A DNA stretch of 63,898 nucleotides, counting the filler, from Octopus bimaculoides (lineage: Eukaryota): assembly GCF_001194135.2 (NCBI RefSeq). It is 4 parts of 4 records of this genome, joined end to end, with 100 filler letters (N's around TTAATTAATTAA, not from the genome) between each part and the next. Parts side by side here need not be neighbours in the genome. Positions count along the whole stretch, not along the records: positions 32,655 to 61,430 come from NC_068983.1; 3 more parts are not named here. One strand, written 5' to 3'. The notes beneath the pieces were generated by a model. That model searched no databases. It was not told the origin of the DNA and was given only the letters and a program-made list of their open reading frames with translations. Shown piece after piece: positions 8,849 to 56,960 of the stretch. A program made the position numbers and the translations under genes. Every line of letters starts with the position of its first letter. The first letter of the stretch is position 1.

Positions 8849-10861
8849 TACGTATATGTATCGTAAAACATGGCCTTCCATTTTCATGGGAGGACAGTTG
8901 GCAAGAAACAGCTTCGAGATGGATTTTTGCATCTAATTTTATTTCCAGAATATCATAATATCATAAGTACATTGTGATTTATAGCGAGCCTCCCCTCCCT
9001 TAAATCGACCAAAAAAGGAAATCGAACAAAAGAATCCTGGATTGTTCTGAAAAATCTTGATATTTACTGCTGGAACGTACAAAAAATAAATACGCAAGAT
9101 ATCGTGTGGAATCTCGCTGTTTACCGAACAAATAACGATAAGATATTGTTTGGCATTTATCAGTACAGATCAGCAATTAGTTTGTTCAGAGAATTTATAA
9201 GCAGGAAGCAGCCTAGATTGACAACACTGAACGGTCTCGAAACACTGGTTGTCCCAGAGTCCCTGGCGCTAATTAATCGAATGTGTTATAAACACACATT
9301 CGTCGTAAATGAGAAGTTATATTACTGTGACAAAACACAGCAACGATTAGCCTGTTCACGTTCGAATCTGCCAGAATTTATAAAGAATACTTATAAAAAT
9401 TATCGGGATGATTCTTGCTGTTCGCTACACATATCAAGATATCTCTTAGTATTCGTTGTAAATGACTTTTATGATAATTTAATGGTTCGTCTATTATTGA
9501 ATTCGTTAAACATTATCTAAAAATGTATTAAGTATCAATTAATTTAATTAGAACTTCACTATTCATCATCTCATCAGACAATTACGTCTGTCAGTGGGAG
9601 TCAATTATTGACCATTTAAGTGTAAGTTTAAATACTAGTAGTAGTAAGTCTCGTTTAGAATTACACCACAGTTAAGGAAGTACTAACTGTGTTGAATAAT
9701 TTAGTCTTACATACCTCTAAAGGGACAGGATGGTGCCAACTACAGTATTTTTCACATTAGAAAATACCTGATGCTGAAAGACAACGAAAGCAAAAATATC
9801 AAAAGTAGCTGTGAGCGAGCGATAGAATCTGTAGGTGGGCGCTCGGCCTGCTAGAATAAAGGAAATAAAAAAACTCTCTTTTCCAAGCAGACTATTTGAG
9901 TGTAACTAGTAAATAGCTGATGTTCGATTACCTGGGACTGGACCTAATAAAATCTACAACTTCAAAAGTAACAGGGAACCAAATGATAGCTTTTGCACTT
10001 CAGACAATAAAGTATGATTTACAATTTGATTTATGAAACATGTATTTGGAAATTTTAAGACAGTGAAATATATTTTATATAATGAAGATGAAAAATAGTT
10101 TTCAAACCGATTGTAATTTAGTGAATATATNNNNNNNNNNNNNNNNNNNNNNNNNNNNNNNNNNNNNNNNNNNNNNNNNNNNNNNNNNNNNNNNNNNNNN
10201 NNNNNNNNNNNNNNNNNNNNNNNNNNNNNNNNNNNNNNNNNNNNNNNNNNNNNNNNNNNNNNNNNNNNNNNNNNNNNNNNNNNNNNNNNNNNNNNNNNNN
10301 NNNNNNNNNNNNNNNNNNNNNNNNNNNNNNNNNNNNNNNNNNNNNNNNNNNNNNNNNNNNNNNNNNNNNNNNNNNNNNNNTATATATATATAATAGAGAG
10401 ATATATAGTATAAATACATGTTTATATATATGTATGCACACATACACAAGCGCACACACAAATAGACATAGACACACACCCACTCACATACACGCATACA
10501 CACATACATACATACATATATATAAATATGATATAAATACATATATGTATGAATATCTACAAATACGACACGTTGTCTATCGTTCGAGGATTTGTATAAC
10601 AATAGCAGTAATTTTGCTTATATAATAGTAAGGTTTACACTTGTGTCTGAAGAAGCAGAAATTTGCAAAATACGTCCAAAAATATGAATATAAGCCAATT
10701 AAACATGCAACATATGTGACGTGAGAACATATAGACGTTAAATGTTCATTTTAATATTAATAAAGTCAATTTAACAATCATTTGCGACATATGGACATAT
10801 TTATAATAGCGCACTTATCTACAGTCTCCTCCAAACACACGTAGACACACACACACACACA

Positions 10862-36103: not shown

Positions 36104-37184
36104 TGTGTGTGTGTGTATGTATGCACGCGTGTGTGTAACGGGAGATAAGCATTTTGACATACTAAAAAGTTGTGCTAAATTTTATTAAATTAAATTCTAT
36201 TCAGACTGAATAATACCGGATATATTAGACACTATAATTTAGTCTCTGAACTACTGAAAACAGATTGGTCAGTATAGTTTTGCTTACGAAAAACTGATTT
36301 CATTTGCATCAACAACTCACAGCGACTCCGATACCGATAACAACATCAAACAGCTGGATCTTGGCAGCCACGGCGCAATCAAATCTTTTCTGATAAGTCA
36401 TGAAGTTACCAACAATGATCACAAGAATAAAGAAGAAAAACGGATAATGTGGTACTCAGTGCATTCTGTTCTTTACTTGGAGAAGTAACCGGTATGTTCC
36501 GAGTTTAAATCCTACCTCAGCCAAATTTGCCTTTTATTCCCCCGGGTTCGACAGAAGAAAGTACTGGGATCAGTAATGTGGTATAGACTTGTATCTAAAG
36601 TAGAAACCATGGTAAGTACGCATCACCCAACAGAAATCGAAATCACGTCTCCACCGCTGGATTAACCAGCACGTGCTTAAGGCATCAAGGGAGGTGGGGG
36701 AAGGGGGAACCATAGAAATGGTAAATGGTTTACGGCACAAAAGAAATCACTTTAAAATTGCTAAAATAATATTCGAAGTGGTTTATATGATCGGAAATAT
36801 AATTTCGAAGTGTTCATTGTGTCATAGGGCGTATCTGATCAACAACTTTGCAATTAAAAAAGTAGGAGAAATCTTTTCAAATATAAATAAAGGAGAGGTA
36901 TACAAATAGAATCATTTATCTTCCATCCTATTGTTAGCTTTGTTTCATTTTGAAAAATAAAGAAATTATTTTATGGGTTATTATTGCTTATATTTTGAAT
37001 TACATACTTATGGAGGAACCAATATCTTTTAAGTGCTTAAGGCCTACATGGCACTTAATCCGACGTTGCACCCCTCCATCAAACAATACACAGCAGTCTT
37101 CTGTACATATGTGTAACTCGGGACACATGTTTACGTATCTGCTTTGTTATGTGTATGTGCATGTATGTACGCATGTATGTATGT

Positions 37185-37545
37185 CATTGTTCAGTTTTAT
37201 TTTAAGATTTCTTGCCAATAGAGAAAGAGCCGGTTTCTAACCTAGATCCAAGCCGCCTTCATTGGAATTTCAACATCAACAACAGGGTATGTATGTATGC
37301 ATGTATGTATGTATGTGTGCAGGTGTATATGTATTTATTCTCATGCATATACTTGCATATCTCTGGAAAGTTTCACAGAATTTTACACTTCTAGTGATGG
37401 ACTGGATCTGTAGTCTTCGAATTAGCTTTCTCCTTTCTGGTTTTGAGAAGCCTAATTTCTCAAGACGGGTATTTAGGCAGCGTGTTACATATCCCATTGC
37501 CCCAATAATTACAGGTATATACCTGAAATTGTAACCTGAGTAGAG
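37185..37545 (-). mobile_element. RLE-type (R4-like) LINE 3' end embedded in (ACAT)n
   Basis: LYSGYNFRYIPVIIGAMGYVTRCLNTRLEKLGFSKPERRKLIRRLQIQSITRSVKFCETFQ; 3' UTR ending aaataaaactgaacaatg. (TATG)n on both flanks. Confidence 0.85.
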
Positions 37546-38439
37546 ATGTATGTATGTACGTATGAATGTATGAATGTATGAATGTATTAGTGTGTATGCA
37601 TATAAATATATAACTTATAACGAGAGAGAGAGGAGAGAGAGGGCGATGGAAAGAAAGAGCGATGGAGAGAGAGGGCAAAGGAGGGGGAAGAGAGAGATGA
37701 GAGAGAGAGGGGAGAGAGAAAAGGGGGAGAGAGAAAAGGGGGAGAGAGAGTACTAAGACAACATGGACAATAATTAACGAAAAGAACCATCAAGAAACAT
37801 AGAAATGCTTCTCATTAACCATGTTTTGTCTGGATTTATAAAAGTTTCAGTGCCGTTTAAATGCATCTGTTTTCCGGAAAGCGTTAGTGATTATATACAT
37901 CATTAGGGTAGACGATAGAACACGATGAAGTCTTTGAACTTAAACTTCGAAGGACAGTGACTTAGACTAGAACGAAACATCAGTAAGAAAGAAATGTAGA
38001 TTATTACGACTTATCATAAAATACATGGTGTCTTTCGATTCATGACAAGAAGCACAGAGAATGAAATTTTCGTCAAAATATCACCTGAATGAAAAAGAAT
38101 TTGAGACGTATTGTTAGTGCGACCTTTGCTAGATAAATGAACGAGACAATAGTATGATGAAAAAGGAACAGCAATAGCAGTATAAATGGGGAGTAGGAGG
38201 TTGAAAAAAAGTGAGAGACAGTGAGAAAGAAAGAGAAAATGAAAGAAAACAACAGATGGAGTAAGTCAGAGCGAGAGAGAAAAACCTGTTCACATGTAAA
38301 ATGGAGAGTGTGCAGTAGGAATATAAACATAAATAGTAAGTAGTCGATGTTGACAACAATTAACGAAGAGAACAGCAGACAACAGTCGACGTACCCTCAT
38401 CAGCCGTCTTACCTGAATTCATAACGATTTTAGGACTAG

Positions 38440-47714: not shown

Positions 47715-49130
47715 TGTGACAGCAATAACTGCTCAGTTCTGCGCCTTGGAGAAGAACTTTCCTCGTGCACATTCATAGTTTCACAAAACATAGGTTGGAA
47801 AGGCCCCAAGATGTTATAACCGGTATGTATAGCTGTATGTGTTTGTGTGACAGGGAGTTAGTTAATACACATATCAATGAAAATAGTCTTCCGTATGCAG
47901 TCTGCTTTATGATATTTCAAGACATCACTCAATATTTTTATGTCGTTTACGAAAAGGCCTGATTGTTACGTTATTTCATCGATCGCAGGAGTACAAAAGA
48001 CAAACTCGGCCTGAAAATGTAAAAGAGACGTGAACCAGAGATACCACAAGGAATTTAATCACATTCGACGACCTGCCCATTCTGTCAATTACCCGCCCTT
48101 ATACGAATAACAATCATAAGTGCACTTACCACTATTAAAAAGTATGTGCGGGTAGTGTTATATAACAGAGGCTGTGAAGAATAAATAGGATGAAATCAAA
48201 GCTAATGAGAACAGATGGCCTGCAGTTTTAATTTCCTTTGATATTTAGAATTATTATATTAACGAGTTCTTTTTCGTTGTTGTTACCGCAACTTCCACTC
48301 CCATTTCTTATTCTTTCATTCTTTTCATTCTTCCTACATTGTCTTCGTTCCTTTTTTTCTTCATTTTTTTCTTTACTTCCTTTCTTCATCCCTTTTTCTG
48401 TTTTATCCTCCCCTTTCTCTCTTTTTCTCTTTCATTTGATATTTTGCTTTCTTTTCTGTTTCCTACTCCTCATGTAACGTATCTTTTCTCCTGACGTACA
48501 TTCAGAAGCCTATAATTGGCAGAATTGGTAGTGGTGGTGGTGGTAGTAATAATGATGGTAGCAGTGCTCGTCGGCTGTGGTAGTGGTTGTGGTGCTTGTG
48601 GTAATGGCAGTGATATTAGACTTCTCTATTGTATATGAGGTAGTTGTTACAGTGGTATTAGCCTTGGCTGTGATGAAAAAAAAAACGAGGATGTTACTAC
48701 TGAAAGCTGTGTCCTTGTTACACATTGAATGAAGGTGGTATTAATAGTGTTATTTTCGCTGTTGTTTATGCTGTTTTGCCCCGAATCGAAGATACCTATA
48801 ATCAAGCACATACCATCTGCGAAAATCCTGTCTATTATTTAAGACATATTGTATTTGCACAAAGTTTTCCATTGAGTTTCCACTTTTTAAGACGTTTGAA
48901 TGAAATTTGAAGGTGTTTTGACTCCTACGTCTAGCATATCTTTAGTAGCCGAGTTGGAGTGATTAAAATCAATTATGGCGGTATTGGTGATAATACAGGT
49001 TGTGGGCATGGCTTATCTGAAATAAATTTATTGTAACTAATTAATTCAGAACTAATTACGTGTATGTGTTTATAACATTTATATGTGTACATGTATACAT
49101 ACACACACAGTATGTATGTAGTATGTATGT

Positions 49131-49461
49131 CTCTTCTATTTTTTAATTATTATAAATCTCCCACTGAGGAGGGAGCTAGTTTCCAACCAAGAAACGAGGC
49201 TCTCTCTTTGAGATGTAGTTAACACAGACAAATTCACATTTGGAACTTGAGAAAAGTCTTGCATATTTTTACTGTCCCCTCACAGATTGCACTTGTAAAG
49301 TACGAATCAGCCGGTTAGTTTGTCTATCTGAAAATCCCAGTTTATCCAGATTCTCCTTTAAGCATTTACTAACAAAACTTAGTGCTCCAATTATTATTGC
49401 TATGAATATGACTTCATAGTCTGGATATAGAAGCTGGAGGTTTCGAAACAGTTGTCCATAG
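49131..49461 (-). mobile_element. RLE-type (R4-like) LINE 3' end embedded in (ACAT)n, second subfamily
   Basis: YGQLFRNLQLLYPDYEVIFIAIIIGALSFVSKCLKENLDKLGFSDRQTNRLIRTLQVQSVR, then after a 1-nt frameshift TVKICKTFLKFQM*. The 3' UTR shares a gagc-gtttc-aacc-aga motif with the 37185 copy. (TATG)n on both flanks. Confidence 0.85.
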
Positions 49462-49636
<175 letters not shown>

Positions 49637-54699: not shown

Positions 54700-56960
54700 G
54701 ATGAACTCTCCCGTCGGTTTCGACGTATGAAGCTTCGACAACGTACTCTTTCTTTGTCAGTCATAATGGTTATATCGAATGTGACATTTAAGTCCCGCCA
54801 ACGATTTGCAAAGAAGGCCACAGATGTTGCAAGTATGAGGATTCCAGGTCACTGCAGGTGGTATATTTGCAGCCGCTTTTCTCCTTTATCTTGCACCCCG
54901 AAGCCTGTTAATGCTGGTTGCAACAAAGTTTTTAATACCATTTTGACACAACGATCTCCATTTTGTTCGCTCAAAACTGTTGTGAGCTATTTTCATTTCT
55001 AAGCAGTTACTCTTCAGCTTGTCTTTATATCTGAGCCATGGTCGACCAACACTCTTCTGTCCACTCTCAAGCTGGCTGTACATAATGACTTTGGGTATTT
55101 TTTCGTCACTCATTCTGACGACATGACCAGCCCAGTGCAGTTGTGACTGTATAAGGAAGCTCTCAATTCCACCAATCTAAACAAGTCGGCATTAGAAACT
55201 CTGTCTTTTAGTGCATGACCGAAGATTGTGCTCAGACAGTCTTTGTGGAAGATGTCGGGATGGTTAATGTGTCGTCTATAGGGTATCCACGATTTTGAAC
55301 CATACAAGAGTGTAGTAAGAATTGTTGCTTTATAGACCTGTACTTTGGTGACTGAGGTGGAGTTCAACACGGCTTCAAAGTGATCTTTCCATAATTTCAG
55401 GATGCTAGATTTGTCAGTCAATAGTCTCTCTATTCGATGAAAAAATAGGAATAACACCGTGCTCTTGAGGACCATACACTTTCTTGAAGCCACCATAAAA
55501 GGCTTTAGAATCCTTTCTGTCTGCAGCTTCTTGGGGGTCAGCAGCCTTGAAAGACCACCAAGTCTCCTTCATTTGTCTCAGAGCTTGTTGGACCTGGCCT
55601 CTGCATTTCTTGTAGGCATTCCCTTTTCTGGATATGCTCTTATAATTTAACTATGTTTTATGACAGCTGTGCATTTTATCTAACAACTGTTGGACATCTG
55701 TGTTGTTATCGTTGAACCAATCTTGATGTTTATGAACAGAAAGTCCAAGAACCTCTATAGATGCAGAATACGTTGCGTCATGCAGAGCCATCCAAGTTGA
55801 TTCTATGTCATTGATATCAACAGTGTTGAGTGCAATGTCCAACTTGATAGAGAGTTCACTCTGCTTTTCAACAGTTTTCAAAGGCAGAACATTAATGCGC
55901 TTAGGTACTGATGACTTTTGTGGTCTAGTGTGTTTCAGATGGAACGTAATCTTACTAGGGAGAAGAAAATGGTCAGAGAGATAGCAGGTGTTATGAAAGG
56001 AACGTGTACTGTTAAAGTCCCTAATATCTCGTTTCTTAATGATAACATAGTCTATGAGATGCCAGTTCTTTGATCTAGGATGTATCCAGGTTGTCTGGCA
56101 TCAATTTCGCTGTTGGAAAAAGTTATTTGTGATGCTTAGACTGAATTCCCTGCAGACCGCTGGAGTTCATTCGACCTACACTGTGGCTACCAAGTACACT
56201 CTCCTATGCCTGATAGTCAGTACCCTCACGAGCGTTAAAGTCACCCATAAGGATAAGTTTATCCCTATGGTGACAACTGGAGATGACATCACAGAGTTAG
56301 TTGTAATATTTATCCTTTTCCTGCTCGGTGCTGGTCATGATTGGGGCATAGCAACTAACAAGCGTAGCACGGGTGTTGTTATCAAGTTCAATACCTTTGG
56401 GTAGAGAAAGCTAGCTATTTCTGTTTTGATGGCAAACCAACACCAGTGGGGCATGGCTTGTCTTCATTTCTTCCACCTTTATTTTCTTCTACCTTAGATG
56501 ATCCTGCAAGACAAATTTCACTGAGTGCAGCTATTTCAATATTGTATTTATTTAGTTCAAGGGCAATCAGTGCTGCTTTTCGTTCTGGTGCTGAGTGACT
56601 GAGTGGAGAGTGTGCACATTCCAAGAACTAAGATTAACATTCCAAGAACCAAGATTAATATTCTTCATGTTTCGACAGCGTTACTGAATAACCAGACAGC
56701 CGTAGCGGGCTGTCAAATTCAAGCTGAGTAGGCAATGCTTAGGGCTCCTTTTCTTGTCCCTCTCCCTGTTGGAGAAAGCAGTGCTGTGTCTAAATAGACC
56801 TACTTTATCACCACTGGAAGACACGGACAGTACAGTTACTCACAAGTTTCGTGCTGGAACGGCTATCACCCAATGGTCGCCGACTGTGTAGAGATCCAGC
56901 AAGAGACTTCCAGTAACACCCTTTACCTGTCCCTGCCGCTTTCACTCTCTCGCCAGAAGA
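54700..56960 (-). mobile_element. RTE-clade LINE, decayed, with the RT domain internally deleted
   Basis: APE start PERKAALIALELNKYNIEIAALSE; HPRSKNWHLIDY near 56050-56090; HKHQDWFNDN; LWKDHFEAVLN joined directly to TKVQVYKATILTTLLYGSKSW; GRPWLRYKDKLK; terminal C2H2-like CNICGLLCKSLAGLKCH. Confidence 0.92.

Follow-up and report, generated by a model that had tools for sequence, protein, structure and literature searches.

LINEs with a restriction-like endonuclease (RLE) fall into clades that are mostly target-specific (PMC4640811), and among these the R4/Dong elements insert either into rDNA or into microsatellites (PMC7998251). R4 occupies the 28S rDNA, Dong is found in (TAA)n, Togen in (TG)n, and some HERO elements in microsatellites (PMC4640811, PMC7998251, PMC3812793). 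In cephalopod genomes, 'Dong-R4' is among the most abundant LINEs of the repeat annotation (PMC8967140), and a 2026 annotation of O. vulgaris counted 1,129 insertions of nearly full length, each ~4.2 kb, in five Dong-R4 families with recent activity (PMC13282606). Insertion preference is not mentioned in these cephalopod Dong-R4 annotation papers (PMC8967140, PMC13282606). Microsatellite-specific RLE LINEs are therefore already known, and the (ACAT)n/(ACTT)n target described here is apparently new: no description of an ACAT- or ACTT-specific RLE element (Dong, R4 or HERO) was found in the literature searched, Repbase Reports lying outside it.

The window, i.e. the whole stretch of Octopus bimaculoides DNA that was analysed (63,898 nt, filler included), carries two LINE 3' ends, hereafter fragments A and B, whose full-length relatives were recovered from other loci. 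The elements are 3.6–4.4 kb in length, consistent with the annotated ~4.2-kb Dong-R4 (PMC13282606), and consist of a single ORF of ~1,100–1,200 aa in which a small three-helix N-terminal domain and an RT are followed by a CCHC motif and, at the C-terminus, a PD-(D/E)XK nuclease. The comparison with Dong and R4 made in the original prediction was apt, since that clade inserts into rDNA or microsatellites (PMC7998251, PMC3812793). As in Dong (Bombyx mori, Anopheles, Biomphalaria, Darwinula), there is a single ORF with RT, CCHC and RLE and no N-terminal zinc fingers, the insertion lies in a microsatellite and the tail is identical to the target. The repeat is however (ACAT)n, or (ACTT)n in a sister lineage, whereas both target and tail of Dong are (TAA)n; moreover, an Rfam scan (E up to 1) of L010, L001, L009 and L002 revealed no HDV-like ribozyme such as has been shown at the 5' end of Dong (PMC3774820). 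Rfam otherwise returned sub-threshold mir-297 noise on the repeat. Domain layout and clade label are shared with nematode R4, the target of which is a 28S rRNA gene site and no microsatellite. The microsatellite-specific HERO families (Repbase Reports 2014, cited in PMC4640811) and the fish element Togen, in (TG)n, are likewise RLE-type LINEs, but their repeat units differ. Waldo (R1 clade; WaldoAg1/2, WaldoFs1) inserts into (ACAY)n, in essence the repeat found here (PMC3812793); its APE endonuclease, however, is N-terminal to the RT, whereas the elements studied here lack an APE and bear their PD-(D/E)XK at the C-terminus, and the resemblance in target is thus convergent, Waldo being an APE-type element of the R1 clade. 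The closest solved structures are those of R2, by sequence for the RT and by fold for the CCHC and nuclease region, although R2 has a 28S rDNA target and N-terminal zinc fingers plus Myb, in place of which a small three-helix domain without fingers is found here.

Fragments A and B in the window

Fragments A (37183–37545) and B (49129–49461) are 5'-truncated LINE 3' ends, both on the minus strand (Table 1). Their positions had been given correctly in the original prediction, with ends shifted by 2 nt, and the abutment on ACAT that it reported was also found, as (ACAT)n in the element sense occurs at both the truncated 5' end and the 3' end of each fragment. The two peptides share 45% amino-acid identity, and the DNA of A and B can be aligned across the ORF's end and the ~105-nt 3'UTR, both elements finishing ...GAC followed by ATACATAC. 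The earlier view of two divergent families inserted independently is supported. A and B read as dead, 5'-truncated copies of two related non-LTR retrotransposon families; a tblastn search of the piece holding them found no third copy.

The 5' flank of fragment A (ATGT/ATGAATGT on the plus strand) adjoins the truncated 5' end with zero spacer, this junction having been set by reference to copy L002 of O. vulgaris. The ORF remnant of A is without its native stop codon and, when aligned, falls on the C-terminal helices in the model of the nuclease domain. An (ACAT)n array lies at the equivalent internal place in L002 and L015, and, judging from the sequences compared, the internal array of fragment A is a family A trait and not a second insertion site. 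Its 3' (ACAT)n is the element tail and/or the downstream half of the target repeat. In fragment B, the 5' (ACAT)n grades into (AC)n as far as 49637, and comparison with L009 places the junction inside element-internal ACAT, that is, in microhomology. The ORF part of B (49461–49237) has one frameshift and is followed by a stop codon (49236–49234), and (CA)n-like sequence comes after the (ACAT)n tail.

Table 1. Features of fragments A and B, with positions in the window, and repeat context of related loci.
Feature	Positions	Strand	Basis
Fragment A, 5' flank, imperfect (ACAT)n, element sense	37546–37598	-	TRF; ACAT score 22/24
Fragment A, coding remnant, last ~69 codons (LYSGYNFRYIPVIIGAMGYVTRCLNTRLEKLGFSKPERRKLIRRLQIQSITRSVKFCETFQRY...)	37339–37545	-	tblastn
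Fragment A, internal (ACAT)n separating the ORF from the terminal 3'UTR module	37287–37338	-	TRF
Fragment A, terminal 3'UTR module, ends ...AATGAC	37183–37286	-	
CTTG-hairpin-CCGG motif in the 3'UTR module of fragment A	37227–37254		
Fragment A, 3' (ACAT)n	37148–37182	-	TRF; ACAT score 21/24
Fragment B, 5' flank, (ACAT)n, element sense	49462–49503	-	TRF; ACAT score 23/24
Fragment B, coding remnant, last ~75 codons (YGQLFRNLQLLYPDYEVIFIAIIIGALSFVSKCLKENLDKLGFSDRQTNRLIRTLQVQSVRG/TVKICKTFLKFQM) and stop	49234–49461	-	tblastn
Fragment B, 3'UTR, ends ...GAAGAGAC	49129–49233	-	
Fragment B, 3' (ACAT)n tail, ATACATAC-T-ACATACATAC	49109–49128	-	TRF 49109–49130
L002 (O. vulgaris, family A): 5' (CCAT)n then ACATACATAC; internal ACAT array like that of A			
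L009 (B-like, ~870 bp): ACAT at each end			
L015: ACAT, B-like copy, ACATACATATATATA, A-like copy with different truncation point			
L016: ACAT, then B-like copy			
L003: B-like copy, then a copy consisting only of the ~105-nt family A terminal module, then degenerate ACAT			
L011: (AC)n as tail			
L010 and L017 (same family, ORF of 1,208 aa intact): (CATA)17-18 upstream, (ATAC)n downstream			
L018 (58% identical): (ATAC)28 upstream, (ACAT)n downstream			
L022: tail is (ACAT)n			
L023 (distant family, ~40% identical to P0009): (TACA)34, full-length element, (TACA)20			
L024: (TACA)66, element, (TACA)35			

The encoded protein and the element RNA

No match was obtained with the A and B fragments in Pfam, nor with the 59-aa fragment in a word-indexed protein search. 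An exhaustive profile search with A and B retrieved 235 proteins, the long matches being of 649–1,208 aa. The closest protein was P0004, a hypothetical protein of Octopus vulgaris on chromosome OX597824.1 (86% identical to A), and fragment B showed 60% identity with P0013. Full-length relatives contain an RVT_1 domain (E 1e-20 to 1e-27) followed downstream by C-x2-C-x8-H-x4-C, by (R/K)PD...(I/V)(I/V)(E/D)...K..Y and then by the segment present in the window. The window fragments correspond to the last 63–75 residues, C-terminal to the catalytic residues and to the RT. An APE domain (Exo_endo_phos) was absent from about 15 long proteins at E up to 1–10, and no C2H2 motif was found in the N-terminal 450 aa of the relatives.

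The best PDB sequence matches were R2 proteins, over the RT (E 1e-21), and PDB sequence profile searches with the nuclease region and with the N-terminal domain gave nothing. The last 213 residues were modelled with AlphaFold (AF2; pLDDT 90.3), and the best Foldseek match of this model was R2Tg (9dou_A; E 9.4e-9, TM 0.71). The R2 proteins of Platysternon and Bombyx (R2Bm) came next, with E of 9.4e-9 to 3e-4 and TM of 0.62–0.71 across the three, and these matches cover the CCHC and nuclease region of the R2 proteins. On the predicted fold, the elements are confirmed to carry a C-terminal PD-(D/E)XK restriction-like endonuclease of the R2 group. The 'RLE-type' label initially given to the fragments is correct by homology, in view of the RT, CCHC and PD-(D/E)XK motifs of the relatives and their R2-like modelled fold.

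At the N-terminus, a conserved motif of ~70 aa (RRNRDY..KWT.ELN.D...GYMKRLK.LWD..HPE...K.LRQQA.FVEKK) is kept across families only 40% identical overall. It has no Pfam match and models as three helices (pLDDT 74), for which Foldseek returned the Myb domains 2cjj and 3osf at a non-significant E of ~7. The modelled three-helix domain agrees with the divergent Myb/SANT-like domain of R4/Dong (PMC7998251), and does not prove it. The elements best fit a putative R4/Dong-like position, to which the 'Dong-R4' label given to the abundant ~4.2-kb RLE LINEs in cephalopod annotations (PMC13282606, PMC8967140) lends only indirect support; HERO, some families of which are microsatellite-specific (PMC4640811), is a possible alternative.

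Approximately 45–70 nt before the 3' end, families of both lineages carry a hairpin with a 5-bp stem and a ~5-nt loop, bordered by YCTTG before the first stem strand and by CCGR after the second; the motif is also present in L024 and is weak in decayed octopus B copies. In nine sequences, pairing was preserved in 86.7% of cells vs 53.7% in shuffles, and compensatory (both-side) changes were seen in 4/5 pairs, slid controls giving 24–44%, on a small sample in which the structure was derived from the very nine sequences scored. No structure was predicted when eight octopus-type 3'UTRs, aligned with MAFFT, were given to RNAalifold. A second hairpin, CTCCC/GGGAG in B and TTTC/GAAA in A, had been drawn by eye and was discarded, the two families being out of register. 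At the 5' end, L010 and L018 have in common the conserved block AGGACGTGTGGATTAYCGCTCT.

Junctions with ACAT and ACTT arrays

Exact ACAT tracts of at least 8 bp number 48 in the piece, where they account for 617 of 27,014 non-N bases (2.3%). Flanks were compared by an ACAT score, defined as the best 24-mer match to (ACAT)6 within a 36-nt window on one given strand; 36-nt windows of the piece reach at least 20/24 in 1.3% of cases and at least 22/24 in 0.5%. The caution originally expressed, that ACAT is common here, was fair, yet this abundance is insufficient to explain the pattern, as the 5' flanks of A and B score 22 and 23, and the chance of both fragments having such flanks is ~3e-5.

Eleven 5' junctions could be read, some in the window and the others at related loci of octopus-type sequence and further assemblies. 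Sense ACAT at a score of at least 20/24 is present in eight (fragments A and B, L002, L009, L010, L018, L015B and L016) against a background of 0.2–1.3%. Of the remaining three, L017 (18) and L015A (17) have weaker or offset ACAT, and L003A (12) has none. The chance probability of 8/11 is ~1e-13, for a sample of about a dozen junctions gathered via protein look-ups in which some loci may be non-independent (L010 and L017 are possibly one locus; L003–L008 are one locus). Some flanks are short because Logan contigs stop at repeats, and L012/L013 (an old diverged copy), L014 (an internal piece) and L019 (no junction) were uninformative. The 5' junctions are thus enriched in ACAT rather than free of such enrichment, and the (ACAT)n-targeting lineage first proposed from A and B is supported, on this small sample, by the eight junctions and by full-length elements of four families (L010/L017, L018, L023 and L024), all with long (ACAT)n both upstream and downstream.

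Every junction read in DNA has a single orientation, with ACAT on the sense strand of the element. Peptide P0033, known from the peptide alone, hints at a 5' flank of (ATGT)n, in the opposite orientation. Flanks read from called peptides (HTYIHTYI, TYMHTY and one MYVCMY) are anecdotal, and this type of reading was dropped in favour of DNA since BLAST had extended into the flanks. On the P0368 scale, 5' truncation points fall at residues ~940, ~1080, ~1130 and ~1145, in addition to full length, and such widely different points indicate that the upstream repeat is the target and not the element's own 5' end.

Several loci are nested. In L015 the A-like copy begins within the tail of the B-like copy, and the module-only copy of L003 begins at the family A internal ACAT array. 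Upstream of L023 there is an older truncated copy starting directly after (ATAC)4, with another truncated copy, also preceded by the repeat, downstream, and ARAGORN found no tRNA in this locus. The upstream array of L024 is preceded by an (ATAG)n array and not by an element end. A clean ACAT 3' tail is absent in several old copies, namely L002 (ending with TGACATATAT), L011, L015A and L003B; in the first three, the simplest explanation is that the array has decayed to repeats rich in AT or AC.

The sister lineage shows the same arrangement on (ACTT)n. L001, from the same assembly as L024, contains three head-to-tail copies, each with (ACTT)n on either side and nothing else between them, and the 5' ends of L020 (full length) and L021 (truncated) lie directly after (ACTT)n. 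In a neighbour-joining tree of the C-terminal region (78 columns), which is rough, without bootstrap and indicative only, the ACTT copies form one group, most ACAT copies another, and L023 stands further out. As the ACAT and ACTT targets follow this tree, target choice seems to be inherited with the lineage. TAA arrays were not found at any junction, the repeats being ACAT, or ACTT in the sister lineage.

Proposed insertion route and competing explanations

We consider it likely that an R2-group LINE lineage, most similar to R4/Dong, integrates by TPRT specifically into (ACAT)n, with ACAT on the sense strand. Starting from the observed domain layout, nuclease fold, junction anatomy, orientation, repeat-separated head-to-tail nests and conserved 3'UTR hairpin, a route of insertion can be proposed. 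By analogy with R2 and Dong, the element protein would bind (ACAT)n and nick the (ATGT)n strand, with the N-terminal domain and/or the nuclease possibly recognising the repeat. The RNA, through its (ACAU)n 3' end, would then pair with the nicked DNA, priming cDNA synthesis, and the 3'UTR hairpin may represent, again by analogy, the RT's hold on its own RNA. Finally, the 5' end of the cDNA would be joined by microhomology upstream in the same repeat, often after premature termination; joining guided in this way fits the junction of fragment B in internal ACAT and the module-only copy of L003, which starts at the ACAT array.

Element-specific simple-repeat ends are common among LINEs and ACAT is abundant in the piece, in keeping with a different reading where ACAT is a carried tail or a product of RT slippage, its association with 5' ends derives from older tails or from chance, and the nuclease has no real specificity. 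Indeed, at L015, L003 and L023 the 5' repeat is the tail of an upstream copy. Insertion into older tails, however, already amounts to repeat targeting, the 66-unit array of L024 follows (ATAG)n and no element end, and the junctions are exact, spacer-free and of constant orientation in DNA, with the very low chance probability given above for 8/11; we regard this reading as improbable. A second possibility, suggested earlier for Waldo-A/B near CA repeats of Drosophila (PMC3812793), is passive accumulation, with insertion occurring anywhere and copies surviving better in repeat-rich, gene-poor, low-recombination DNA. The extreme abundance of simple repeats in the window, as detected by TRF, would be in line with it, but it predicts proximity, and not nucleotide-exact abutment on both sides or a fixed strand. 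It also leaves unpredicted the use of one repeat per lineage within one genome (ACAT for L024, ACTT for L001), and L023 and L024, having perfect arrays and intact ORFs, suggest young copies that are already confined to the repeat, all of which makes passive accumulation very improbable.

It might also be argued that the flanking microsatellites expanded after insertion, from short ACAT-like seeds at the element ends, considering that family A has an (ACAT)n array within its 3'UTR and that microsatellite birth from LINE tails is known (PMC3812793). A separate seed would nevertheless be required for each of the unrelated 5' truncation points, and 17–66 perfect units are already found upstream of full-length copies with intact ORFs, so that post-insertion growth appears hardly credible. 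Specific integration into (ACAT)n is the reading that we retain.

On a broader scale, and as a tentative suggestion that we would not regard as the probable outcome, the elements may belong to a widespread, undescribed R4/Dong-like branch that switched from (TAA)n to tetranucleotides, with ACAT and ACTT sisters in one genome having the hairpin and the three-helix domain in common; the recently active 'Dong-R4' of octopus could then be spreading and interrupting ACAT arrays. If true, targeting of (ACAT)n would state concretely where a group of LINEs inserts that recent annotations record in octopus as abundant and as active of late. A preference for repeats would also defeat short-read insertion callers, and failure of such callers at repeats may account for no new 'Dong' insertions having been found (PMC9115989). 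The close ACAT and ACTT lineages would represent a natural pair for mapping the residues that read the repeat, a matter relevant to the retargeting of R2-type elements, and the finding would bear on the high frequency and the frequent interruption of ACAT arrays in these genomes.

Internal repeats and 5' ends of the LINEs

In family A, the LINE family of the R2-like nuclease (RLE) type to which the window fragment at 37183-37545 belongs, the stop codon is separated from the terminal 3'UTR module by an internal (ACAT)n (Table). One copy, in the related locus L003, consists of this terminal module only, and its start point is the internal (ACAT)n.

At the extreme 5' ends of the full-length ACAT-type families of L010 and L018, a conserved block, AGGACGTGTGGATTAYCGCTCT, is found in common, followed about 60 nt downstream by a second conserved block, TATCCATNGCGA, with which pairing is possible. 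These blocks may represent a structured 5' RNA element; no HDV-like ribozyme was recognised at these 5' ends by Rfam.

A 128-aa ORF in the window (peptide ...KVQVYKATILTTLLYGSKSWIPYRRHI...), for which no Pfam domain match was obtained, looks like the post-RT region of a different LINE type.

Microsatellite surroundings

The simple-repeat load of window positions 32655-61430 is very heavy (116 TRF rows in 28.8 kb), with many compound arrays, such as ACAT adjoining AC, and several N runs, which shows assembly breaks within such arrays. At L024, which holds a full-length ACAT-type LINE, the ACAT arrays are bordered by (ATAG)n/(GATA)n, indicating that the insertion sits in a compound microsatellite. 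Rfam matches to mir-297 on (ACAT)n and related arrays scored 40-47 bits, below the gathering score of 90; at the L010 and L002 arrays they represent microsatellite noise rather than a gene.

Features of the LINE loci and their repeat arrays
Feature	Position	Remark
Family A internal (ACAT)n / terminal module	window 37287-37338; L002 (O. vulgaris) about 10427-10470; L015 about 905-920; L003 493-597	
Conserved 5'-end region	L010 82-140; L018 117-170	common to two full-length ACAT-type families
128-aa ORF	window 55110-55496	- strand
(ATAG)n/(GATA)n arrays	L024 3167-3445, 7766-7805	bordering the element's upstream and downstream ACAT arrays
mir-297 sub-threshold matches	L010 3-76, 4428-4503; L002 4731-4801, 13397-13467	
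Repeat of ~610 bp, two copies	L023 7405-8015, 8352-8967	each between (TACA)n arrays
Shared ~70-nt sequence (...ggcgaataaaa)	L001 3316-3386, 8640-8708	each upstream of a different (ACTT)n array

Possible further elements in the arrays

Immediately downstream of the ACAT-flanked LINE of L023 lie the copies of a ~610-bp repeat, whose plus-strand end (...GATGCTCTACCACCTGAGCTATCTGACCACC) resembles an antisense tRNA head. No tRNA was called in it by ARAGORN; the repeat may be a tRNA-derived SINE, in the same microsatellite as the LINE and in reverse orientation.

In the sister lineage flanked by (ACTT)n, an end similar to the ~70-nt sequence of L001 was also observed at L020 (360-400), ahead of its array. 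This shared sequence looks like the 3' end of one more (ACTT)n-tailed element, which suggests that the arrays contain nests of several families.
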